DNA from: Entomortierella parvispora E1425
Taxonomy: Eukaryota; Fungi; Mortierellomycota
DNA: 64,000 bases
Assembly: GCA_020891255.1 (NCBI GenBank)
Contig: BQFW01000003.1
Location: 248,001 to 312,000, forward strand
Reading direction: 5' to 3'
Numbering within the stretch: the stretch's first letter is position 1; each line of letters starts with the position of its first letter. Made by a program: the position numbers and the translations under genes. The notes beneath the pieces are model-generated. The model saw only the letters and a program-made list of their open reading frames with translations. It was not told the origin of the DNA and searched no databases. Of the stretch, positions 26,421 to 59,700 are shown piece after piece.

Positions 26421-28642
26421 TGCCAACATGAAACGCCGTCGACCAAACACGAGAGTCATAGTAGTCAATGGGCAGCCAACTAGGACAACTATCGCACCGA
26501 ATTGACCACAGGTCTCTTTTCAATTGTCCATGCAAAAATCGACCAGAAGAGGCCAATCGTTTTTTTTGTTCATGAGTGGATCTGTTTAATTACCATGGAT
26601 ATTGATCGATCCAATGTTTGACAAATACAACACAGATTCCTTTGATTCTTGAAAACAAATCCTTTTGGCACGAGTGGTCCTTCAGCAAAACAAGGGTTTC
26701 GAAATGTACGCCTGGGCATGGAGGATCTAGTTCGGACTACAAAAGATATTGAAAATACCAGCGGCGAAGAGTCGATGAAACTGTTAGCTTCTATCTCGCA
26801 GCTCCTATTGCGTTTGACCCTTGAGGACAAGAACTAAATACAACTTACTCGCTGAATGGATGAATGGAAAGAAACCACCGGCAGCAAAACAAAAAACTCA
26901 AACTTACTTGCTGAAATTGTAAAACGAAAATACCAGCGGAAGGTATATCCTATTGTTAGTTGGTGTTCGGGACTATTGCATGTTTTTCCTTGAGTGTATG
27001 TTCATGGACTCGACTCCGTATGAGATGGAATAGAACACCGCAAAATGGAAAAAAGAGACATCAGAAATAGTACTCATAGGTCTCATCAATTCCTGCACTG
27101 ATTTGGTCATAGTGTATCCGGTCTTCTTGCTGCAGTGATAGGAATATCATCCTCATTTCTCCTTCAAGATACTGGGGGGGGGCGGGGGAGGGGTCTTTTG
27201 AAAGTGAGAAGACTATCCAACTTGCTCGCTGATAGATTAGAATGAGAGATCCGGATATGATCATGGCATTACTGATGATATCCTTGACAGCCAGTACAAG
27301 ATCCAACTTACAGGCTAATTGAGAGGAGCGGATAGGTGCTCCCTAATCCGTGTGCAGGTCTCGGTTCTCGGTGGCAGTCATGGCAGTCGTGGCTGCAAAA
27401 CTAGGTAATGAATGAAAAGGATAAAAGGATTGAAAGACGAGAGAAAAAAAGAGAGAGGTTGTGTCTGCTTTGTGCGAACAGTTCCTTTCTTGGTTTTTGC
27501 GTGGCCCAAGCTTTGATATCGAGGCACGGACGTGATGCGGGGAAGAAGAACTAGACGCGTGCGTCTGGCAAGAGAAGGACACGACTTTTTCTTTGATTTC
27601 CTCTTCCCTACGCCCTCCCTCTCTTTTCTTTCGTCTTCAGTTTAATTCAGGCAAATGACCTCCTCCTTCTCCTCCCGTGGACAGCTATGAACGAGATCGG
27701 TATCCTGAGGTAGGTCACTGTCAACATAAGATGTGTACATTCTCGCTTGAGTCTCATATCCTCAGCCATAAAGTGCTCCCAAGGACCTCGTCAACTTCGG
27801 TTTCTAGCAAGGCACTGGAATCACAAGCTGGAGAAAGGTGAAGGACATGCTCCTCTAGACTCCTCCATGACATCAATGGCACTGGCGATAAAGACGATGT
27901 CTGAGGATACAACTGGTGTGAAGCAGGCTTCTTCTCTGGCGAAAGATAGGCCCAGAGTTTGCAGCGGGGAAAATCAGTGCGAAAGAAATCTAGGATAAAA
28001 ATAAAGAATAGCTAATAATAAAAAAAGGGGCCTGGGCACAAAAGTTGATCCCCACGTCTGGTGTCTCTCTGCGCACCAAAAAGAGAATCTTGGTCAATGG
28101 CAAACCGATTGCTGCAGAGGAGGACGCGTCTTGCTTCTCTGCCTCGACTGGAGATGAGCATGTCTCTACTGCGTCGCACCAGAGGGTATGATAAAAATAA
28201 GAAAGCAAAGGGACAGGATGTCGCCATGTGCAGCGGGCAAGGTGCGACACAAGGAAGCGAGGCTGTGGAACAACACGTTGACAACACAACACATCAGGGA
28301 AAACAGGAAGAGAGGGAAAAAAGGAGACAACGGCTCCCGGCTGTCCGTCGTCTGTCTCCAACGCCAAGAGATTTGTGGTCAGGGTCCGACTGCGTGGGGA
28401 AGAAAGACGGATCTGCTCCGTCCGAAAAGGAAATAGGCGCAGGTCGACTTTCTCTTTTTTTTTTTTCCTTTCTTCCTTGGCTTGCCTCTTCTCATTCATT
28501 CATTCCTTTGCTCGAGCCATTCTTTCCTTCTTTCCTTCCTTCCCTCCTTCCCTCTCTTTACTCCCTCTCTTGCATTCGACTCTTCATTCAGCCCTACCTC
28601 AACTCAACCTCAACTTAAACAGCCCCCCTTCTTTCTTTCCCT

Positions 28643-44977: not shown

Positions 44978-47900
44978 ATGGACACGGCCACGCTCTCGGC
45001 CTCTGCCTCAGTCTCCGTCCCTGACTCTGCACAGCACACCGCCAGCTCCCCTTCCCTCTCCGCATCCTCCTCGACCTCCAAACTGTCCAACAACGCCAAT
45101 GGCTTCTACAACGACCTTCTCCTGGCTGCACCTGCCCAGAATGGACATAGGTCTAATGGCTTCCATCCAGAACGTGAGTTAGACCAGGACCAGGACCAGG
45201 ACTCTTTTGCGCCCACTCCCATCATGGCCCGGCCCCGCAAGGCCGGTCTGCAGCTCATCTCTGAAGGCACCCAGACCAACCACGGCAACGTCAACATGAA
45301 CAACAGCAATAGCAACACCTTCATCGGCAGCAATCCCCCCACCTGGCCATCAGGCACCATTGCCCGCTTCCACACATCGCCGGCTCCCTCGCCCTCGCCC
45401 TCTCCTGAACACGTTCAAGCCTTCCAGGATCAGCAACAGCAACAACAGCAACAGTTTTCATCGCCATCAGCGACGCGGCAAGGTGCTGCCGCCGCAACTA
45501 GCCCAACTGCCTCTGCGCCGTCGACTTTTGCTACCGTCACCTCTGTTACTGCACAGCCCACATCATCATCCTTGCATACCCCAATGACCCCGCCAAGGAT
45601 ATCCTCCCTTTCGCCCAAGAATCACGCCTCACAGCTGCAGTCGGGCCATGCCTTTCAGGACGGACCTGCCTCACCCCCACCCTCTCCTCCACAACTTGCT
45701 GCAGTCCCTGATTCTAGTCCCGGTAACTCTCCTGGCCAAGCCTATCCTTCTCGCTTCTCCTCGCTAATGCCCAATGGCCCCGTCAACGGACAATACTATT
45801 CTCAGCAGCAACAGCCACCGGAACAACACGCACAGGTGCAACAGGCACAGAGTCAGCAAGGTCAGGCACCACTGGATTACACCCGACCAACGACATTTGC
45901 CCTTGAGCCCTCACCCACTTTGAGCGCGACAGAAACCTCGACCGCCACTGCCGCCTCCTCCAAGCCCACTTCGTCAGCCATTTCCTCGCCAGCCTCTTCC
46001 ATCTCCATGGTCCCGACTTCTGCCACAGTTCCACCGACGCCGATTGAATATGCCCTTGCTGCTCTATCGGCTTCTCCACGGCCGTCCACCTCCACCACGT
46101 CTTCGATGATGAGCACCCCTGTGAATCGTCCTCGTCCCTCCAGCTACGCGCCTACAAAGATCACTGATGTCTCGTCCACACTGGCCACCATGACAACGCT
46201 TGCAGCTTTGCCAATACCCTCGCAATCCACCACGCCCTCTGGAGCTCTGTCCCAAGGGTTTGCTCAGGACCTCAATGCTCTCCCTCCTTTGGAGCAACAG
46301 CAACAGCAACAACAACAGCAGCGACAGCAACAACAACAGCCTCCCTCGACAGAGCCATCGACACCACAACAGCAGCAACGTCAGTACAGTCCACGACCCA
46401 ACGCGTCTGTCCTGACTGCATCCGGTGTAGAAGGCGCCTCTGGAGCTGGCGGTGGATACCAACTGTCCAGACACAACTCGCCCACGGCCTACAGCCCACC
46501 AACACGCGCCTCTACGATGGACATCCGTAGGACCCACACTGGATCGCTCTTGCTTGGTGACTCTCCTGCCTCGTCCTCTTCAGCCCGGCAACAACCAGCA
46601 CAGGCTCAGGATGCACATGGAGAGAGTTCAAGTCGCGTACGAAGAAAGCAGATCTACCGCCGTAACACATACTCTGCCGACCTGGCTTCGACTTCGTTCC
46701 AACGGTCCGATGACGAGATGGAGATGGACGAGCTGGAAGAGGCCTATCGAAGTAGGATGGATGCATTAAAGAAGAACAGCAGTAGACGCATGTCATCCAA
46801 GCGGAAAAAAGACGATGACAACGACAGAGTCCTCATCGGCACCCGTATCGGCGAGGATCATGTCAACTACGTGCTGATGTACAACATGTTGACGGGTATC
46901 CGTGTCAGTGTAAGTTCCTACACTTGTCTCTCTCCTTCTCTCCCCTTTTGTTGTCGCAGCTATTTCTTGATGATGGGATGATGGTTTGGACTCCTTATCT
47001 ACTGAGCTGACACGATACTCCTTTGTTTTTCCAGGTGTCTCGATGCAACGCCAAACCTCAACGTGCCTTGGTGGACGAGGATTTTACTTCGGCCCACAAG
47101 CTGGCTTTTGATATGTAAGGGCGAAAGGGTGATTGATGATTGACGATTTTAAGGGCCGAATGACGCGAGCAATCCGTTTAATTATTTTTTTCTGTCGCTC
47201 TTTTCGTCTGTAGTACTGGTAACGAGTTGACGCCGTCTTCAAAGTACGACTTCAAGTTCAAGGACTACGCCCCCTGGGTCTTCCGCCATCTTCGGGAAGA
47301 CTTTCATATCGATGCTTCGGATTACTTGGTAAGGCACATGATCACGATCACCATCACGGACGCAGTGGATCCACCAGGATTATTTTTCGGGGTTAGATCG
47401 AGGGACTGGGGATAGGCGAGAGAGAGAGAGCATGTTTTGGATCAGACGCTGTTTAGGTTGGACAAAAAGGAATGATGATGAGCCCACACCCAGCCCAGCC
47501 CAGGATCCAACAATCATACATACTCGGCAAAGCGGCACGGGAACAGCCTTGCAGATGTTGGCTGTGGTGGCGCCCAACTCTCTCTGCTATGAAGAATCGA
47601 CCCTTACATCTGCTTGTCGAGTCATGGAGAAACAGGGTCATGATGAGGGCGCTATTTTTATGATTTGGGCATGAATATCTATTTCGACGGGAGGGGGGTG
47701 ACTTGAAAATTTAATTTCCCAGACAAAGAGTGGGGTCGTGCATGCAAGAGAAAAGAGCAGGAGTCTGGCCTTTGGGGAGAGAGCCACGACTTTTCTCCTT
47801 TACTGGAGGCACATTCATATACCTGAGCACAGCCGCATCAAACCTTGACATTGGAGGAGAATAATAGCGTCACTCACCTTTATATTTTGTTCCATTGTTC

Positions 47901-49224
47901 TTGTGTTTTAGGTGTCACTGACAAGCAAGTACATTCTCTCGGAACTGGGATCCCCTGGAAAAAGTGGAAGTTTCTTTTACTTTTCACAGGATTACCGCTT
48001 CATTATCAAGACAATACACCATGCTGAGCACAAGTTTATGAGAAAGATCCTCAAGGATTACTTCAACGTACGTATCAACCTATTTTTTTTTTTTTTTTTT
48101 TTTTGGGTTAGTCTACAAATGAAATGAAATGATATGAAATGATACTTAGTCAACTCATTCTTGGATGTCCTCTATCTCTCATAGCATGTCAAACAAAATC
48201 CTCATACGCTGCTGTGTCGCTTCTTTGGATTGCATCGTGTGAAACTGCCACATGGCCGCAAGATCCACTTTGTGGTCATGGGCAATGTTTTCCCTCCCAA
48301 CAGGGATATTCACGAGACATACGATTTGAAGGGCTCAACCTTGGGTCGAGCCATCAGTGATGAGGAGCTGAACAACAACCCCAGGGCAACCCAAAAGGAT
48401 CTTAACTGGGTCAACCGTAACCGTAAACTGGAGCTAGGACCAGAGAAGCGACATTTGTTCGTGGAGCAGATCAAACGGGATGTCGAGCTCTTGGCGCGAC
48501 TCAACATCATGGACTATAGTCTTTTGATCGGTATCCATGACATCGAACGTGGAAACAGAGATAATATTCGAGATAACACCCTCAAGGTGTTCCACGTACG
48601 TATCCTCCCTTCTCCTCAGGCGTGGCGCGCTGAATGGAAGAGCTGAAAAGAATATATGAAGGATATTGGTATTAATTACATGTTTTTTTTATAGCCGGAT
48701 ACATCCAAACAACTGGTACGGGAACCGTCAAGAAGAGACAAGCGGGAAAGCAAAGTGAACGCACTCAGGATGGCCGTAAAGGTGTCTGATCCCCAGGCAC
48801 TAGGACCTTCAACACTACCCTCGGATTCCTTCTCAGAACGTCGGCACTGCATCTTTTACGCGGATGATGGAGGACTATTGTCGACCAATGAGCAGAATGA
48901 ACGCGGTGAGGATCTATACTACCTCGGCATTATCGACATCTTGACGCCTTACAACTACGTCAAGAAGATTGAGCACTACTGGAAGAGTATGAGTCAAGAC
49001 AAGGTAAAGAGAGCCGAAATATGTTTTGTGGAGATATCTAAATACTAGACCATCGCTCGAATTGAGACTCATTCGATTCTTTCCTTTTGACCTTTCTATA
49101 GCATGCGATTTCTTCTGTCAACCCAAGAGAGTACGCGTCTCGATTCTTGAGCTTCATGATCCATGCTCTTCGGGTGAATTATGATGTGCTCCCTACTCTG
49201 CAGGCTCATCCTCACCAGGAGTAA
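44978..49224 (+). CDS. MSS4: Phosphatidylinositol-4-phosphate 5-kinase (Mss4/Its3 type) with a ~600-aa S/P/Q-rich N-terminus, multi-exon
   Basis: [85 protein letters not shown]. Confidence 0.93.
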
Positions 49225-50044
49225 CGAGCTCTCCCATGGAAATGACCCGAAATCACAAAGCGAGCACAGGACAACGATGGCATGGCATGGCATCAAAGGA
49301 ACAGCAACACAGAGCAAAAAACAAACACACCCATTCAGCGGCCAAAACCACACACACACACACGCAAATACCCATCATTTTCAACGATTTCATCTGCACG
49401 ATCTTCAGAAATCCTTTTTTTAACGATTCATGACATACCACTTGCCCATGCCGGGAAGGAACATGTCACGCAATACCCCTCTTCTTGTTTTCCATCCCGG
49501 TTGTGCCCCCTCCCTTTCGCACCAACGCGAGTGCATCCCTCCCTCGACTCTACTGTTCCTTTCAGGACCATACGATGCGACACTCATCATCTTAGACTGC
49601 GTTGTTTTGATATCCTTTTTTGTTTGTCCTATCTCCTTTTTTTTTCTTGACAAAACCTCGACCATGCCATGACCCTCTGATGTGCTCATGCTTTTCCTTT
49701 CATTCCCAGCCTCAGACTCACGACACTCACCCAAAAAATAAAAATAAGGGGGCGACAATGATCGACCAAAAAGACTTTTTTGAAGCTGTCCATGATTCTC
49801 CAAAAACAAATGATGCCAACAATGGCCCCAGGATGGGATTCTTTCTACATCTTGACCACCTCAATCATTTCCTCCGATCGCTGTTGTGTCAAGGTATCAG
49901 TCCACCCAATGTAAAATCTTGAGGCTTTCAGAACAAGGAACAACACCTCAACCGCCCCGCAAAGCAATTCCAAACCACTTGTTGCCTCATAGCCAACGGT
50001 TCCTTTCAACAATGGAAAAAAAAAATGTCCGGAGGACATAAGGG

Positions 50045-51071
50045 GTAAGGCAATTGTGTGGACAGTTTTCAACTGGGTGCTTCCTTTGCCAGCAGGCAAC
50101 TCGCTTCATGGAGAACGCCGAGGACAGTAACAAAAGAAACATGTTGCGAGAACCCCATCTCGGCTCCATGACTGGCCAAGGTAGACTGAAAAAAAAAGGT
50201 GGTGAGGAGGAGCAGTGTCAATCCCCACCTCCTTGTGGTGAAGTGCTGCCCCTTCCTTTCTTTTGTCTCGTCCCCTCAAATCATTTTCCCCTAGTCTACG
50301 GTCCTCCCACGGCAAGGATCATCACGGAATACGTCCCCCTCCCGGCTGTACTCCCTGTCGCACCAACCCCACCAACAAGAGTGCGTCCCTCTCCCCTTTT
50401 GACGTCTATTGTCCCTTGCGACATTCTACAGCCGCTTTTCCTTCGATTCTTTTTTCTTTTTTTTTTTTTTTTGCTTGTTCTCTTTTCTATTTTTGGTGAG
50501 AGTCGCGAGTCTGTGTCGAGAGGGTCAGAACATGGTCGAGGATTTTGTTGTGAAGAAAAGGAAAGAATAAAAATAAAGAGGACAAACAGCTATCCGTCGA
50601 ATCTGCAAGAGGAGGCACTTCCAGCCTCATCGTCACAAAAAAGATTTGCTCGGGGCCCATTCGTGATTCTTGCTAAAACTTGACAACTTCAAGTGCTCAC
50701 TGCCCTCACTTCCCCCCGTCGCTGCCCGTGCCAAGGTATCACTCCACTGTAAAATCTTGACGCTTTCAGGACAAGGAACTGCACAAAAACCGACTCCCAA
50801 AACACCTGCAGATCGCATGGAGCCACAGAATCAACGGATCCTTTCAACTAAGGAAAAAAGACACGTCCGTGGCCGTATTGTGTAAGGCAACTGTGCAAAC
50901 AGTTTTCAACCGGACACCTCCTTGCCGCAGGCAACTCGCATTATAGGGGATCCCATAGATAGTTTCAAAAAACTTTTGCGAGAACCCCATCTTGGCTCAA
51001 TGACTGGTCAAGGCAGACCAAAAAAAAAAAAGGAGGGGGGGGGAGAGGAGGAGCAGGGTCAACCCCACCTC
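50045..51071 (+). repeat. Dispersed direct repeat of ~190 bp: 50045-50231 and 50882-51071
   Basis: Shared blocks gtaaggcaa, acagttttcaac, gcaggcaactcgc, ttgcgagaaccccatct, ggctc-atgactgg-caagg-agac, gaggaggagcag and ccccacctc occur in the same order. Confidence 0.85.
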
Positions 51072-51219
51072 GTCAACAAAACTGCCCACAGATGGGTTTT
51101 TGTTCGGCCCCTGGACTGGACCCCCTTTCCCTTGATCCATAAAGATGGTTTGACCCACGACCATTGCCTTTTTTTTCTCATTCGCTTCCTCCCCTCTCCC
51201 TCGCCTTTTCTCACCTAAA

Positions 51220-53654
51220 ATGAAGTTCCAGTACATCCTTATCCTTGCCACTTTCATTGGCTTTGCCGTAGCCGCTCCTGTGTAAGCTGACAAGTTCGAG
51301 TCCAAGTGATGCGTGTTTCTAGATGCAAACTGACAACGGTATCGATTCTAAAATATCATTGTGTACTTTTCTACCTTTTTCTTTTTTTTTCTGGCGCTGT
51401 CAGCCCGTAAGCCCAGTCGACGTCTCGCATTCAATGGCCAAGATGCACCCAGATTGAAAGCTAACGGTATTACATGTCTCTTGCTCGTCCCGTGTCCTTT
51501 CCAATTCCGTCAGCGAGTAAGTTGAGTTTGCCTCTTGCGCTCAAGGACCAAGGTGCACTTTGATCAAAACTGAGGCTAACAGTACTGCATGCCTCTCATT
51601 ATTGGTGTGTCGCTTCCACTCCATCAGCACGTAAGTGGAATCTACGTCTTGCGCTCAAGTGCCAAGATGCGGTCCTTCGAGATTGAAACTAACGGCCCTA
51701 CATGTCTTTCGCTTTTGGTGTGTCGTCTTTTCCAATCTTCTAGCGAGTAAGTCGATCTTGCACCCAATGGCCAAGATGAGGTCTTGCGAGATTGAAACTA
51801 ACAGTGATATTTGTCCCTCGATCTTGGCGTATCCCTTTCCTCTTTATTAGCGCGTAAGTCGGGTCTACGTCTTGCACTCGAAGGCCAAGATGTACTTTCA
51901 ATCACCGTTGAAACTAACAGCACTTCATATCACTCATTCTTGTCGTACCCTCAATACATCTGCCAGTCAGTAAGTGGAGCCTCTTCCTTTCACCCGAGGG
52001 TCAAGATGTCTTCGATCACCATTGAAACTAACAGTACTACATGTCTCTCATTCCTGGCGCACCCTCAATATATCTGCCAGTGTGTAAGTAGAGCCAATGT
52101 CTTTAACTCGTGGGCCAAGATGCAGTTCGACGAGCAATGAAACTAACAACAGTACATGTCTCTCGCTTTTGGCCATGCGCTTTCTAATCTACTAGGAAGT
52201 AAGTCGAGTCTACGTCTTGAATTCAAGTACCAAGATACGTTTTCAATTGACATTGGAACTTACAACATTATCATATGACCACTTTTGATATGCCCCTTCG
52301 AATCTCCCAGCGCGTAGGTGGAATCTTTCTCTTGCGCTCAATGGCAAAGGTGCGATCCAATCGACTCGAAACTAACAGCATCAAATGACTACTTTCGGTT
52401 GTGCTCTTCCTAATCCACCAGGGAGTAAGTCCAGTCTACGCACTTGCACTCAAGGACCAAGATGCTTTTCGATTGAAACTAACAGTTCCACATGACCACT
52501 TTTGGCGTGTCCTTCCGACTACTAGAATGTAAGTGGAGTTTGTCGCCTGCACTCAAGGTCCATGATGCAGTCCGCGACAGTGAAACTAATAGTATTACTA
52601 ATATTGCCTTTGGCGTCTCCCTTCTTAATCCACCAGCCTGTAAGTCAAGTCTACGTCTTGCACTCAGGGGGCCTAAATGCGGTTTGATCGACATTGAGAC
52701 TAATCATATTTAAATGACCACTTTTGATGCTGTCCTTTCCAATCTATCCAGCGGGTAAGCTCAAGTCCTGGTCTGATCTGGGACTCAGGGGCCAAGGAGT
52801 GCGGCCTGATCGACATTGAGACTAACCATATTACATCACCCACTTTTGACATTTCCTTATCGAATATATCAGCCTGTAAGTGGAGTCTGCCTCTTGCACT
52901 CGAGGGCTACAATACAGTACGATCGATCTCGAAACTAACAATACTAAAATGACTACTTTGGGGCTTTGGGGCATATCCTTTCGAATCTACAGTGTGTAAG
53001 TGGAGTCTTCCTTGCACTCAAAGGTTAAACCTCGCCTCGATGGACATTGAAACTAACAGAATCGTACGTCTCCCGCGTTTGCCATTTCCTTTCTAATTCA
53101 ACAGTCAGTAAGTCAAGTCTACGTATTGCGCCCACGAGCCGAGGATGCGGCCCGATCGACATTGAAACTAACAATACTACATGACCCACTTTTGGAATTT
53201 CATTTACGATCCACTAGCGCGTAAGTCGCCTTGCACTCAAGGTCCAGGATTCATTTTGATCAACAATGAAACTAACAGAATCGCATGTCTCCCGCTTTTG
53301 CCATTTCCTTTCTAATAACATAGCGAGTAAGTAGAGTCTACGTCTCGTCCCCAAGAGCCGAGGATGCAGCCCGATCGACATTGAAACTAACAATATTACG
53401 TGACCTACTTTTGACCATTTCCTTCACGATCCACTAGCGTGTAAGTTGCGTCTTTCGCCTTGCACTCAAGGTCCGGGATTCAGTTTGATCAACAATGAAA
53501 TTAACAGCTTCACTTATCTTTCTGTTTCGCCATGTCCTTTCTAACCTACCAGCGTGTAAGTCGAATCTTGCACTCAACAGACAAGATGTGATCCGATCGA
53601 CGTTGAAACTAACAGTACTACATGACTCTGGTTCATAGTGCCGATATTCATTAA
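51220..53654 (+). CDS. Micro-exon gene encoding a 45-aa predicted secreted peptide (MKFQYILILATFIGFAVAAPVPDTDAHVNAEILGLVHADVVADIH); 22 exons, 20 of them 3 nt long
   Basis: Exon 1 is 51220-51281 (signal peptide). The 3-nt exons start at 51404, 51514, 51628, 51744, 51851, 51967, 52081, 52196, 52311, 52422, 52526, 52637, 52752, 52873, 52993, 53105, 53218, 53324, 53438 and 53553, each as YAG|NNN|GTA(A/G)G. The last exon is 53639-53654 (ends in TAA). Total 138 nt, open frame. No RNA evidence is available. Confidence 0.85.
51282..53638 (+). repeat. Tandem array of 21 mutually homologous introns (83-122 bp, mostly 101-118 bp)
   Basis: Unit consensus GTAAGT-(g/c)gagtctacgtcttgcactcaag-gccaagatgc-...-ttGAAACTAAC-a-tactacatg-c-cttttgg-...-YAG, recurring every ~104-121 bp. 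The first intron is the most divergent. Confidence 0.92.
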
Positions 53655-54307
53655 GGAAGTAAGCAGAGTACAAGGTGCAGCCCAAGAACAGGCCATATAA
53701 CGCTGAACCCCCTCGAGATGTCCTTGACAGAAGCTTGTAGCTTGTCCGAAAGAAGATCCGAGCTACTAAACTAACATACCCTCCTTTCTCTTTCCCCCAT
53801 CATCTTCAGTGAGCTGTAAGTTCTGGTTAACTGATATGTGTGGAATCTATGGTTCTCTTTTTTTTTTCTTGCCATTTCATTCTTATGATTGAAGCGGTAC
53901 TGACTCCATTCCATCTGGTGCTCCGTCCTCTTGGTAGTCCTTCGAGCTCGATATCCCGTAGCCGGAGCTATGGCCAATCATCTGAAATCCCAATTCGCCC
54001 AAGACGCCCCATCCTGTTGCAAGGATTTGTTTTCAAGAATCTCAAGTCAAGGACCCTGATTTAGTTGTATACCATCGGATCGAACCCCCCCCTCCTCCTC
54101 CTCCTCCTCCTCCTCCTCCAATGGAATTAAACAGATACATATATCCACAAATCTCCATGGGGGTGCAGCGCCAGAGCTGAAGCACCAATGCCCCCAATTG
54201 CAGTGTTGAACAACCGATTTCATTTGCAGGACTTATTTTTATTTTTATTTTTTATTCAAGCCGGGAACTCATGTTCTTCACAGTATTGCAGTCCTCTTGT
54301 TCAATCC

Positions 54308-56220
54308 TCAAACTGCCAAGGGGGCATCCACATTTCGGATCCGGATCCCGCTCTGCTTCAACGTATCCTTGACAGTCTCCAATGGAACTTCCCTTCTGTG
54401 GAAGATACCAGCGGCCAGCGCCGCCTCCACGCCTGTCTTCTCAAACACCTCGACAAAGTGCTGAGGTGATCCTGCTCCACTCGAGGCAATGACGGGGATT
54501 CGGATCGCGTCGCGCACATCCTGGATCAACGCCAGATCATATCCTTGCTTCATACCATCCTGATCCATCGAGTTGAGCAAGATCTCGCCAGCTCCCAAAG
54601 CCTGGCAAGCAATCACCAACTGCCGCACATCCATGTCTCTGCCCTCGCGTCCTCCACTGACTGTACACTGGTACCAGCAGAACCGCTCTCCGTTGGGTCC
54701 CAATTGAGCTGGCTCGATCACATGGTGAGTGGTGTCCGAGGGCGAGTTCACATAGACCTTCTTGGGATCGACCGAGATCACCACTGCCTGAGATCCATAT
54801 GCATGAGCAATCGTCTCAATAGCACTCGTGCCATCACCCTTGCCTCCCAAGGCGTAGAACTTTTCGGCCGCATAGACAGCATCCGATCCAATAGAGACCT
54901 TGTCAGCTCCGTTCCTGAAGTACTCTCCTGCAACCTCCAAGGCCGGGTGCAACTTGCCATCGGGATCGACCACATCCTTGATACCGCCTCCGATTGTCAA
55001 GGGCACAAAAACAGTCTCGGATGCACGACGCAATACCTCCAGCATGGGCATGTCCAACAAGGGGCAGTTCCTGAATGAGGTAATGTTCAAGAATGTGATT
55101 TCGTCTGCTCCCTCCTCAAAGTACCGTCTTGCCAACTCGACAGGCTTTCCCAGATTGCGGACATCTCCCTTGGAGTTCTCATCCTCACTTTGCTCACGTA
55201 CATCGTACTGGTCTCCCTTGGTCACCACCAAATCTCCTTGATCGTTCGCACGAACATCCAAGCACGCCACAACTCTCTTGGTGAATCCATCTGCTGAGGC
55301 TTCGGGCACAAAAGTTGGGTTGAGAATCGACAATGCTCCTGGGACCAGTCCCTGTGATGGGTTTTGCTGGAGAAGAGCCAGATCAGCCTCAGCGCCCTTG
55401 GCAGCTCCACCGTCCAAGAAAGCCTTCAAAACGTTCACTCCGGCAAATCCTGACTTTTCGGGGTGGAACTGTGTGCAAAAGATGTTGCCTCTGCGAACTG
55501 AAGAGATAAAGACCTGGTCACCATACTGGGTCGAGGTTAAGCACCACTCCTTGGCCTCCACAGATCCCTCCACGAATGGCACTGCAAACGAATGAACAAA
55601 GTAGTAGGCACGGTCGGCTTCCAATCCACAGTCCAGTGCTCTTTGAGGTCCTTGGATCGATCGTGCTGTGTTCCAGCCCATGTGAGGGACAGCCTTCGTC
55701 GTCGATTCAAACAAAGTGACCTTTCCGGGGATGATGCCCAGACCAGGGACAGAAGGACTCTCGTCTGATCCCTCAAAGAGGGTCTGCATGCCCACACAGA
55801 TACCCATGAAGGGCTTGTTGAGAGCCAAGTACTCCTTCAAGGGCTCTGCGTATCCTTTTGTGTGGAGCGACGTCATGGCACTGCCAAAGGCTCCCACTCC
55901 TGGAAAGATGAGTTTCTATTCAATTGCAAAGAGGAACCAAAAGTCAGGAAATCAAGATGGATAACTTTTTTTTTTCATTTCGTGAAATAAATCTCCGAAG
56001 ATCAGCCAGCGTCGAGAGCCAAAAAAAATAAGGGTTCGACGGGATAACAAACAACAAAGAACAGCTTTTTGGAGGCTGCGTGGATCGTTTTGCTTACATC
56101 GGCCTTGAGGATATCGGAGGGGTCCTTGACGTATGTGATGTCGTGGCCAAGCTTCTTGACAGCGTTGACTAAACTACGGACGTTGCCAGCGCCATAGTCG
56201 AGGAGATATGTTCCAGGCAT
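54308..56220 (-). CDS. HIS7: Imidazole glycerol phosphate synthase HisHF (bifunctional), 2 exons
   Basis: LDYGAGNVRSL, PGVGAFG, GICVGMQ, QFHPEKSG, VVACLDVR, PLTIGGGI, EILLNSMDQDG, ALAAGIFHR. Confidence 0.96.
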
Positions 56221-56722: not shown

Positions 56723-59700
56723 TTATACAAAGTACATGTTGTCCAAGATCCCGCTCTACAACATAAACACACGCATGGTCAGTAAAAGTAGCTACATGGA
56801 ACAGATACCAAGTCGAGTAATAGAGCAACGGACTTACCGACGTCTGGAATGTTGGTCCAGATCCACTGGAAGAACTGGCCGAGTCTGAGAGCTCATTCCC
56901 CTGGTAATATCGAGCACGGTACGCCAACAAGTGTGCGTAGTACACAGCAGGCACAATACTGACGGACTTGGGGCAGCGCGAATAGGTGTGGCAAAGCTGA
57001 TAAGTCAATTCCTGAAATCCATCCGATGAAAACTTGTTTTCATCCAAGAGAATGTGGTAGAGGGTTGGTCGAGACGTTCCCTGTATACCACCGTGACTCT
57101 GAAGATCTATAGGTGGATTTGCAAAGGCACCAATATGAGAAAAGGATATATGGATCTCATAAGACTCAGTTCAATGACAACAACTTACAGAAATCAAATT
57201 CGGTCGGATGAGTGATGACAGTGTCAACAATCGTTCCTGCAACGCAATTGCCAGATCGATCGACAGTAGCATCGTTTTGCTGGGAATGACCCTGCTGGAT
57301 AGGGGGACGGCCTTGTTGGAAGGGGGGGCGACTTTGCTGGTAAGGAGGGCGGCCCTGCTGGTAATGAGGACGGCCTTGTTGGTAAGGAGGACGGCCTTGT
57401 TGGTAAGGAGGACGGCCTTGTTGGTAAGAAGGACGGCCTTGCTGAAAGGAAGGACTATATTGCTGCTCTGACCCGGCCTGCTGCTGTTGACCAGGGCTGT
57501 TCTTCGCCGTGGGGAAAAATCGAGCATGGTGGCGCTTTTTGACCACGCAGAAGGTCGTTGGAGGATCATAGTTTTCTAATATTATCCAAAAGGAACGAGC
57601 TCTGTCTTATTAATTTACTTCCAAAGAACAGAATGACACATGACTATGAGCATGCATACCGTTGATCTGATGACATGCTTCCTTGACCGCCTTGAACTCC
57701 TTGTCAAGAATATCAGCATACTGTCCCTCCGAGACGCCATCGCGATAGAACAAGATTCTAGCAGGTAGACTCTTGACTTGGCGTTCGAAAGCTAGCAAGA
57801 GCTGGAGCACAAGATCCTTCAGTCCATCGATCACTTCCTGGCCACCTTCCTGCACTTTGATTCTGCCAGAAAACTGAAATCCAAAGATATCCATGGAAGC
57901 CACCACAGCCACGATAGACGGACGATCCTCCCCACGTGCGGGATGTGTTACATCAGCTCCAAAGATGATGGTTGGCTGCTCAGTCATGAACTTGGAACCA
58001 TTTTTCAAGACTGAGTTGCATCCACCGAGCTATATTGACAGATATTAAAAAACTCTTGTTAGTATATTACGATCTTGCGGGCAATAATGTCAACAAACCA
58101 CGATAATAGTATACCTTCGAGTTTATCTTCAACGTGAGCATGCCACAATAAGCCTTCATCTTGAAGTTGTCCTGCGTAGCTTTTTCGGAGAGCACGCACT
58201 GAGTCATGATACCAGCTCCTGTAGTCTCGCAGTAGGTTTTGAGGTTTGGGTACACGCCGCCATCACCCGGTAGAATAACCAAAATGACTGAAATTTGAAA
58301 ATATTGGTTAGATCAGGTTGTAACATTCTCCTTATCTAACTTGGAGCCAAGGGGCTAGCCTGTGAATCAACTTACGTTGTGGGGGCTTGCGGCAGTGAGT
58401 GGTGATCAAGGAGCGCATGGTGTTCACGCTACCCTCAATATTACCCGCTTGGCCGTACATGATTGGAGGATCATTAATGGGCACAGACATTCCTGAGAAA
58501 AAAAAATGGATCGTCAGCTCAGGTACTGGAGAACATGACCATGCGACAGTCATCATCATATCACTACCTTTCTCTACCAAAGTCTGAGTGAGCACTCGGA
58601 CGAAATTTCTGACTTGGGCTTCAGCAAGGCTCCTATGATGCACCACAATAATCCCCATGTCAAAAGCTGTACGCGTTATCTGTCCGTCGGCAATTGGAGG
58701 CAAGCACTTACGATTCATGGTCGAGAACGAGAATGCCATAGGAAGAAAGAGTTGCACCTTTGTACAGCTTGCCCAGCTAACATTTGCAGAACCGCAGGTA
58801 AGTCTCTGCCTTCAAAATAGCTGATGCAGACATGGATTAATAAAGTGTGTATCAATACCTTCCAGCTGCCCTGAAATGGTTTCTCGGACCTTCCTCCGAA
58901 TCCGATCTCGGGCGCAGACAAGATTCGAGCAGGAATCACCTCCATATCTTTGGAAACCTCCAACTTGAAGCTCTTCAAGTACTCGTCGCGATCATGATCC
59001 AAGAGTGGAAAGAGTTGCTCAATTCTCTTTGCACGATCTGATGGCCTAAGTGTGGTGCCCCTGATCATCTGTGCAGTCTGGTCCGGACCCAACTGAAATG
59101 CTCAAAAAGTAAAACAAATATCAGGGTGTGCAACATTAGAACTGACCACGGGCTCATTGGAACTCGCTTTACCTTCTTCTGGTAACGTCTACCGGGAACG
59201 ACTTCGCAGACCTCGGCAGGGTAGTAAATCATCTTGGAATCCTTGCCCTTCACACCGATACAAGGCAAAAATGGATAGCGAAGTCTCAGAGAGTAGGCGG
59301 CATCATAGTACTGGGGGATGGTGATCGCCTTCTTTGAGCCGTCGTTCAGCTCCTGATCGAAAGTTATGTCCTCTGCCCTCTTCATGCTTATCTCTGAGAT
59401 TTTTCGGACGCGTCTCTTGAAATCAGGACCGCGATGGGAGACAGTGAAGGGAAGACCTTTGAAGTGCCTGTTGAATCTCCTGAGATCGGTTGGACTCAAT
59501 CGATTGAGATCAGCGGGAGTGCGGGCGTTGCGCGCCATCAGGTCCACCATCAGGTGCTCTACTTTTCCTGCTTTGTAAAAGGCCGTACTTGCAATGTCAA
59601 TGTTGGCGTACAGCTTATCCTGCCCTGCTCGAACGGACTGGAATGCTCCATTCCAGCGCTGGACTCCGCCTCCGAGATCCTGTGCGCCCGTAGAATGGTA

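Follow-up and report, generated by a model that had tools for sequence, protein, structure and literature searches.

Micro-exon genes (MEGs) of Schistosoma encode secreted, fast-evolving products, typically from exons of 6-36 nucleotides (nt). Here we analyze a locus of comparable design in the soil fungus Entomortierella parvispora (Mortierellaceae). It lies in a 64-kb stretch of the genome (hereafter, the window), in which a short exon coding for a putative signal peptide is followed by 21 tandemly repeated intron-like units, each separated from the next by exactly three bases. As in the schistosome genes, the signal peptide belongs to exon 1, the predicted coding sequence (CDS) consists mostly of short symmetric exons with lengths in multiples of three, and skipping of exons keeps the frame. 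In contrast to MEGs, the introns of which are not tandem copies, all the internal exons here are 3 nt long and the introns are paralogous repeats. No homology to a schistosome MEG family was found, the predicted peptide having no homologue. The likeness is thus one of architecture only, and here the architecture is read from DNA.

Other known systems share individual features with the locus. Ratchet points leave a 0-nt 'exon', and in stwintrons one intron interrupts a splice signal of another. In both, as here, acceptor and donor nearly overlap and consecutive splicing is implied. The present array differs from both in having 3 nt at all 20 junctions and introns that are complete and independent, so that the spacer would stay in the mRNA. 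Single 3-nt exons are known from animals and plants, with examples in Drosophila homothorax (PMC7392893) and RPS24, and were inferred in the fungal lipS gene of Dactylellina haptotyla (PMC5639578). They indicate that spliceosomes can include a 3-nt exon, but they are isolated, have unrelated flanking introns and reside in ordinary genes, whereas here there are 20 in a row. Tandem arrays of tens of intron-plus-exon units, subject to birth-and-death and unequal exchange, are represented by SNORD115 and SNORD116 in SNHG14 (PMC11608373). Unlike those small nucleolar RNA host arrays, which carry a box C/D RNA in each intron and longer non-coding exons, the Entomortierella units have no detected RNA family or fold. 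Finally, introner-like elements are similar spliceosomal introns of ~100 nt found at several loci of one genome, a property shared by the present units; they are scattered as single copies among unrelated genes, and stable secondary structures are predicted for them (PMC3609843, PMC4457414). In contrast, the units described here are arranged head-to-tail with 3-nt spacers, show no consensus structure and differ between strains by a step of two units. Their family also occurs at a second locus of the window, and every copy observed belongs to a tandem array at a single type of locus; none is a lone insertion in an unrelated gene.

A full-text search of 8.4 million papers and preprints gave no account of one-codon exons in series or of arrays of intron-plus-codon units. 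We consider a spliced one-codon-per-exon gene for a fast-evolving secreted peptide to be the most likely reading of the locus, and hold it with moderate confidence. The observation at the DNA level is solid, and the model of expression built on it is probable.

Array architecture and predicted product

Junctions were located by a regular-expression scan of the window. All the features of the gene are on the forward strand. Exon 1 (51220-51281, 62 nt) starts with ATG, encodes MKFQYILILATFIGFAVAAP plus two nucleotides (ATG, 20 codons and 2 nt) and is bounded by a GTAAGC donor at 51282. By rule, MKFQYILILATFIGFAVAAP was judged to be a signal peptide: it has a basic K, a hydrophobic core of 15 residues and A-V-A before the likely cleavage point, with small residues at -3 and -1. 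Two upstream ATGs, at 51092 and 51145, reach stop codons before the first donor. The ATG of exon 1 is the only one with a frame open to that donor, and it sets phase 2.

The structure proposed in the initial annotation was reproduced in every detail, from the signal-peptide open reading frame (ORF) at the first donor to the joined product. There are 21 repeat units of 83-122 nt, of which 20 start with GTAAG and one with GTAGG, while 13 end with CAG and eight with TAG. The donors are GTAAGT (17 units), GTAAGC (three) and GTAGGT (one), and all 21 were counted as being of the GTRAGY type. A CTAAC-type branch motif is present in every unit, as CTAAC itself in 16 of them and as CTAAT, TTAAC, CTTAC or CTGAC in the rest. 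The distance from this motif to the acceptor is 42-53 nt (~47) in units 2-20 and 25 nt in the last one. Taken together, the features of U2-type introns (donor, branch motif, AG-poor pyrimidine-rich tract and YAG) are found in 21 of 21 units. At each of the 20 junctions the sequence reads YAG-NNN-GTRRGY, and the triplets, in order, are ccc cga cac cga cgc tca tgt gaa cgc gga aat cct cgg cct tgt tca cgc cga cgt cgt. With every intron in phase 2, the joined pieces form a CDS of 138 nt (62 + 20x3 + 16) for a predicted pre-peptide of 45 residues, MKFQYILILATFIGFAVAAPVPDTDAHVNAEILGLVHADVVADIH-stop. The internal exons, 3 nt in 20 cases out of 20, hold 60 of the 76 coding nucleotides located 3' of exon 1. 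The stop codon TAA (53652-53654) lies within the 16 coding nucleotides that follow the last unit. If cleaved as predicted, the product would be an acidic, His-containing secreted peptide of ~25-27 residues that includes the stretch APVPDTDAHVNAEILGLVHADVVADIH.

The junction motif is nearly specific to the array. Over the whole window, the forward strand gave 20 matches, 19 of them junctions of the array (the tighter regular expression used for this count passes over the GTAGGT junction). The remaining one, at 45168, falls inside a coding exon and was dismissed as a chance match. The reverse strand gave four matches, three of which belong to a second, smaller array described below.

The units run along the forward strand as follows. 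Intron 1 (51282-51403, 122 nt; GTAAGC...CTGAC...CAG) is diverged from the other units and precedes CCC at 51404-51406. Intron 2 (51407-51513, 107 nt) leads to micro-exon 2, CGA, at 51514-51516, and intron 3 (51517-51627, 111 nt) to micro-exon 3, CAC, at 51628-51630. Micro-exons 4 (CGA, 51744-51746) and 5 (CGC, 51851-51853) are preceded by introns 4 (51631-51743, 113 nt) and 5 (51747-51850, 104 nt). Unit 6 (intron 51854-51966, 113 nt; micro-exon TCA, 51967-51969) is 80% identical to unit 7, the intron of which (51970-52080, 111 nt) is followed by micro-exon TGT at 52081-52083. Introns 8 (52084-52195) and 9 (52199-52310), both of 112 nt and the latter with the branch motif CTTAC, precede micro-exons GAA (52196-52198) and CGC (52311-52313), respectively. 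The GTAGGT donor belongs to intron 10 (52314-52421, 108 nt), after which come micro-exon 10 (GGA, 52422-52424), intron 11 (52425-52525, 101 nt) and micro-exon 11 (AAT, 52526-52528). The branch motif reads CTAAT in both intron 12 (52529-52636, 108 nt; then micro-exon CCT, 52637-52639) and intron 13 (52640-52751, 112 nt; then micro-exon CGG, 52752-52754). Intron 14 (52755-52872, 118 nt), with a GTAAGC donor, and intron 15 (52876-52992, 117 nt) are followed by micro-exons CCT (52873-52875) and TGT (52993-52995). Intron 16 (52996-53104, 109 nt; then micro-exon TCA, 53105-53107) is part of a two-unit higher-order repeat, and intron 17 (53108-53217, 110 nt; then micro-exon CGC, 53218-53220) is 85% identical to unit 19. 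Introns 18 (53221-53323, 103 nt) and 19 (53327-53437, 111 nt) precede micro-exons CGA (53324-53326) and CGT (53438-53440). The series closes with intron 20 (53441-53552, 112 nt; branch motif TTAAC), micro-exon 20 (CGT, 53553-53555) and intron 21 (53556-53638, 83 nt), in which the 3' part is shortened. The 20-nt exon TGCCGATATTCATTAAGGAA (53639-53658) then completes ...V-A-D-I-H and TAA, and ends at a GTAAGC donor.

Conservation of splice signals and turnover of units

Units 2-20 are paralogous, with a mean pairwise identity of 64% (range 55-85%), which implies that most of the duplications are old. Splice signals stand out from this background. Over the 14 signal columns (six of the donor, five of CTAAC and three of YAG) only 14 of 264 cells depart from the consensus, compared with 449 of 1768 cells in the other columns of the unit (binomial P = 5.5e-18, an exponent not to be taken literally as the units are partly dependent). 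Nearly all of these departures are T/C at donor position +6, C/T at acceptor position -3, or CTAAY variants. The tails between branch motif and acceptor contain three AG dinucleotides in 873 nt, against 21+/-3.8 in composition-matched shuffles (minimum 10 in 5000 shuffles); the 5' halves of the units contain 64 in 1047 nt. Such an AG-exclusion zone is a requirement of scanning 3' splice-site choice. The column profile also reveals blocks in the 5' half of the unit that are conserved beyond the splice signals.

Selection on splicing had initially been proposed from two features, the preserved signals and the fixed 3-nt spacing. The signals are indeed far better kept than the intron bodies, while the spacing alone is not significant. 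Judged by these patterns, each unit is under selection to stay spliceable. Wherever two neighboring units are both spliced out, the triplet separating them must be retained in the RNA. The use of the AG right after CTAAC as acceptor, which would produce exons of ~50 nt, was rejected. This AG is 2 nt from the branch motif and is present in only 13 of the 21 units; moreover, the resulting 'exons' would be the AG-free pyrimidine tracts, and their lengths are not divisible by three. Introns in the window measure ~90-200 nt; for the distance between branch motif and acceptor only five clean ordinary introns were available, too few for a comparison.

Among the 3-nt stretches of the unit, the micro-exon triplet varies most, with a column divergence of 0.62 (0.55/0.60/0.71) compared with an intron mean of 0.36; only 0.9% of the 3-column windows within introns are as variable. 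Such fast micro-exons may reflect either diversifying selection or relaxed constraint on a peptide, or else they may be the sole unconstrained bases of a non-coding RNA.

The array is also found in other sequence data. An independent short-read contig from the probable source sample spans 51058-54079 with no differences, and a second strain, X3, comes from another sample of another study. The identical contig and the presence of the array in the second sample argue against an assembly artefact. In X3 the array is ~92% identical and His7, a neighboring gene, is ~5% diverged. Over 51376-53227 there are 145 substitutions and 32 gap letters. X3 lacks 53228-53447, that is, exactly 220 nt or two units in register. 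In the part of the array where this deletion falls, Tandem Repeats Finder reports a period of 219 nt with 84% matches, and units 16, 18 and 20 alternate with units 17 and 19 (identity 77-85%). The 220-nt difference together with the 219-nt higher-order repeat represents the footprint of unequal crossing-over between units. Growth of the array by tandem duplication of intron-plus-codon units is thus supported by its sequence.

A base-by-base comparison with X3 covers 51376-51700 and hence 3 of the 20 micro-exons. Within this region, changes affect 0 of 42 signal bases, 21 of 274 other intron bases and 4 of 9 micro-exon bases. The excess in micro-exons over other intron bases (Fisher p = 0.0045) stems from micro-exons 2 (CGA>CCT) and 3 (CAC>CGG). 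Exon 1 of X3 has one synonymous change, one I>L replacement and T>C at 51281. The last of these removes the only competing donor (GTGTAA) and spares GTAAGC, which leaves phase 2 in both strains. It also bears on a rejected alternative, in which the GTGTAA donor at 51280 would turn micro-exons into whole CGN (Arg) codons in phase 0: that donor is weak, and it is destroyed in X3.

Related arrays and genomic context

The initial annotation knew of no comparable fungal gene. The architecture is not unique, as it recurs both in the same genome, in the form of a mini-array, and in other fungal lineages. Metagenomes were scanned for GTAAGT, 88-115 nt and YAG-NNN-GTAAGT, repeated twice, a pattern for which we roughly estimate ~10 matches by chance. 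The scan returned at least 120 loci. Many of the matches were discarded as simple AT-rich satellites (TAA spacers) or for having no intron features (e.g. L110), while several are true analogues with unrelated unit sequences. Locus L166, with 12 micro-exons, belongs to the same unit family (nhmmer E=7e-12). Of the arrays seen, L093 (1209 nt) contrasts uniform introns with varied micro-exons most sharply. Its ten introns of ~129 nt are ~88% alike, and its spacers read CCT CGG GTG CTT CTG GTG CGA CCT CTC CCC. The micro-exon and intron column divergences are 0.61 and 0.12 in this array, 0.59 and 0.14 in L177, and 0.72 and 0.22 in L087, all three being independent of the Entomortierella array. Hence the triplet varies more than the rest of the unit in all the arrays for which this was calculated.

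Three of the loci, L087, L099 and L177, are AT-rich arrays of 4-17 tandem introns of ~95-110 nt with 3-nt spacers, placed immediately 5' of an ORF that carries kinase motifs and in frame with it (phase 1). From the conserved N-terminal and catalytic motifs NFxxWxSxNxFIDKFIQ..., EWIPYNQF... and HCDFHxGNIL we take this ORF to be a TKL protein kinase of the Glomeromycotina type. The spacers are ~47% GC, whereas the introns are, by inspection, strongly AT-rich. In L176 and L200 two unit types alternate. The minus strand of L168 (3930 nt, 21% GC) contains at least 32 consecutive micro-exons, 27 of 3 nt, three of 6 nt and two of 12 nt. They are thus all multiples of three; their GC content is 42%, and the introns between them, 62-418 nt long, are not repeated. 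Translated codon by codon, they yield an uninterrupted and strongly hydrophobic peptide, TPYLFLPILLLWLF... Micro-exons that are GC-rich, multiples of three and in frame with a kinase point to coding use of the architecture in general. These arrays show that the architecture is used in clearly coding settings and that it can far outlive the divergence of its introns. By analogy only, they lend support to a peptide gene in Entomortierella.

The gene does not end at 53654, as had been assumed at first. Another GTAAGC donor is located four bases after TAA, and two more canonical introns and a terminal exon follow the stop codon. The first probable post-stop intron (53659-53809; GTAAGC...CTAAC...) and the second one (53816-53937; GTAAGT...CTGAC...TAG) each have as acceptor the first AG 3' of the branch motif. 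Between them, the sequence reads as a 6-nt exon, TGAGCT (53810-53815). The terminal exon (53938-54100, 3' end approximate) is probably the 3' untranslated region (UTR). It is homologous to L166 and to the last exon of the paralogous mini-locus, which lies beyond the mini-array (from 26737 leftwards, minus strand); the two exons of the window have matching start positions, each directly behind an acceptor. An identical 21-mer, AAGGATTTGTTTTCAAGAATC, is present in both terminal exons of the window, at 54021-54041 (+) and 26644-26664 (-), which makes two matches where none is expected by chance. A near-copy with small changes lies downstream of the array in L166 (~1830-1850). Since its frame differs between the two loci, the conservation is at the nucleotide level, and AAGGATTTGTTTTCAAGAATC may serve as a 3' UTR or processing element shared by a small family of loci. 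Beyond the terminal exon, before the 3' end of His7, lies a perfect (CCT)x9.7 microsatellite (54091-54119).

The mini-array itself (26738-27317, minus strand) consists of units of the same family with spacers cga, caa and cga. It is decayed, with one GCAAGT donor, one 56-nt unit that has no branch motif and an unrelated insert of ~260 nt. The main array is located between the convergent genes PIP5K and His7, the latter coding for imidazole glycerol phosphate synthase, in a spacer of 5.2 kb. The protein encoded by the His7 exon is 87-88% identical to those of Entomortierella chlamydospora, Mortierella alpina and Dissophora ornata and 94% identical to a metagenome protein. In Mortierella alpina, Dissophora ornata (two assemblies) and Gamsiella multidivaricata, the His7-PIP5K spacer is ~0.85-1 kb long and contains neither an array nor similar sequence. 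Therefore, the array is lineage-specific at this locus; the contigs L081 (closest relative) and L082 (Entomortierella) end at or just after His7. Junction motifs in L081 were set aside, as they are antisense to the Piwi gene. The Argonaute/Piwi gene of the window contains a Gln/Pro-rich tandem peptide repeat (QQGRPPY-like; 57166-57569, minus strand), which is also present in L081. Upstream of the array, a direct duplication of ~350 bp (~80% identity; 49880-50230 and 50715-51066, ~835 bp apart) ends ~150 nt before the ATG and leaves exon 1 outside; in X3 the joints in this region are rearranged.

Readings of the array and their meaning

According to the reading that we favor, the ancestral unit would have been one short U2-type intron plus three exon bases, multiplied by unequal crossing-over into the present 21 introns. 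Fungi with short introns rely on intron definition, in which the nearest partner is favored. Each donor would accordingly pair with the branch site and acceptor ~110 nt downstream, and the units would be removed one by one during transcription, each splicing event adding three bases and leaving the next donor in place. Every unit would contribute one residue to the secreted peptide, and its gain or loss would alter the length of the peptide codon by codon with the frame intact. Micro-exons evolving faster than the intron bodies would fit a secreted peptide that is rapidly diversifying or weakly constrained. The long and uniform distance between branch motif and acceptor might be an adaptation as well, as it would hold U2 ~50 nt from the U1 of the next unit. 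Transcription, junction use, translation, secretion and peptide activity are all inferred here from sequence.

A number of observations weigh against this reading. The intron bodies have accumulated 41 indel events in 2092 nt, from which ~1.6 would be expected in the spacers, and the probability of finding none is ~0.2. Variability of the predicted codons peaks at the second position and is lowest at the wobble position, the opposite of what purifying selection on a protein would produce. By simple calculation, a frame open over 20 codons has a chance of ~0.38. As for in-frame skipping, every skip pattern does keep the frame without a stop, but the 'stop-proof' property itself (no TA or TG at micro-exon positions 2-3) is marginal, with a chance of ~0.07 calculated in the same way. 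The 45-residue peptide had no match in 5.8 billion proteins including ORFs from assembled RNA runs, although such a blank is uninformative, and the longest ORF across the array likewise had no protein match. A search of sequencing runs gave no RNA run with the array; the His7 exon matched only DNA or unlabelled contig runs. The homologous metagenome array L166, read in the same phase, would code for a peptide unrelated to this one. The mini-array has no signal-peptide ORF (the frame of its upstream ATG stops before the first donor), which, together with its decay, implies that members of the family can be non-coding or dead. It may also be sterically difficult for U1 to bind 3 nt beyond an acceptor. 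Finally, the full-text literature search returned no transcript-level report of twenty consecutive 3-nt exons.

It might be argued that the locus is expressed with most or all of its micro-exons usually skipped, in the extreme case by joining exon 1 to 53639, and that the array is a tolerated, self-expanding intron satellite. The main product would then be a much shorter peptide, MKF...AAPVADIH (25 residues before cleavage), or else variants of several lengths. The frame-keeping, stop-free nature of all skip patterns would suit this explanation, as would the lack of peptide conservation between homologous arrays. So would L166, L087 and L176, where decayed donors fuse two units into one intron of ~200 nt and loss of single micro-exons is evidently tolerated. 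However, rarely used sites should decay, and here donor, branch motif and acceptor persist in all 21 units, as do the AG-free zones, at an identity between units of only 64%. An intron of 2.3 kb would also be very long compared with the ~90-200 nt introns of the window, and intron definition favors the nearest partner. We consider extensive skipping unlikely.

A non-coding spliced transcript would account for a different part of the data. What matters might then be the introns (as stable lariats or small RNAs) or the conserved terminal exon, with the signal-peptide ORF a relic or coincidence. Such a transcript is consistent with micro-exons that evolve fastest and have no wobble-position pattern, with the conserved blocks in the 5' half of the unit, with a terminal-exon element conserved at the nucleotide level across loci and with a paralogous mini-locus that has no ORF; tandem intron arrays are, moreover, known in non-coding host genes (SNORD115/116; PMC11608373). 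Yet a search of both strands of 49000-54400 gave no Rfam match at E<=1, RNAalifold applied to 19 units found zero consensus pairs (energy 0), and no C/D or H/ACA boxes were seen in the units. A clean signal peptide that opens with the sole usable ATG and reaches precisely as far as the first donor is hard to reconcile with a non-coding role. Nor would that role lead one to expect micro-exons of unrelated arrays to be GC-rich in AT-rich genomes, multiples of three and in frame with a kinase ORF. On balance, this explanation seems to us quite improbable. An alternative in which intron-derived tandem repeats have lost transcription or splicing, leaving a dead satellite or pseudogene, draws on the array's lineage-specific position in an expanded intergenic region (5.2 kb vs ~0.85-1 kb) and on the decayed sister array in the same window. 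That very mini-array, with its GC donor and a unit devoid of branch motif, illustrates what true decay looks like. In contrast, the main array combines signal-specific conservation (P~5e-18) with an AG-exclusion zone in units that are 36% diverged, and none of its 42 compared signal bases changed between strains. A dead array is, in our view, highly improbable.

If the junctions of the one-codon-per-exon gene are used, it would be the most extreme split gene of which we found a trace, with only ~5% of the locus coding. It would set a practical lower limit for the size of constitutive exons in series, provide a test of how the spliceosome handles a donor located 3 nt after an acceptor, and represent a clean natural case of intron gain by tandem duplication. 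There would also be a hidden class of secreted-peptide genes and kinase N-terminal extensions, invisible to gene finders and spliced aligners.

More tentatively, tandem duplication of an intron plus one codon might be a general and as yet undescribed way in which early-diverging fungi (Mortierellomycotina, Glomeromycotina and others) build and remodel coding sequence residue by residue, a possibility to which we lean less than to its opposite. Were it true, all the units would be spliced and there would be genes with tens of consecutive 3-nt exons, and neither standard annotation nor RNA-seq aligners would detect any of them. In-frame variants of secreted peptides and protein N-termini, differing in length and sequence, would arise through unequal crossing-over and through combinatorial skipping, and selection would act on single codons while the introns stay alike.

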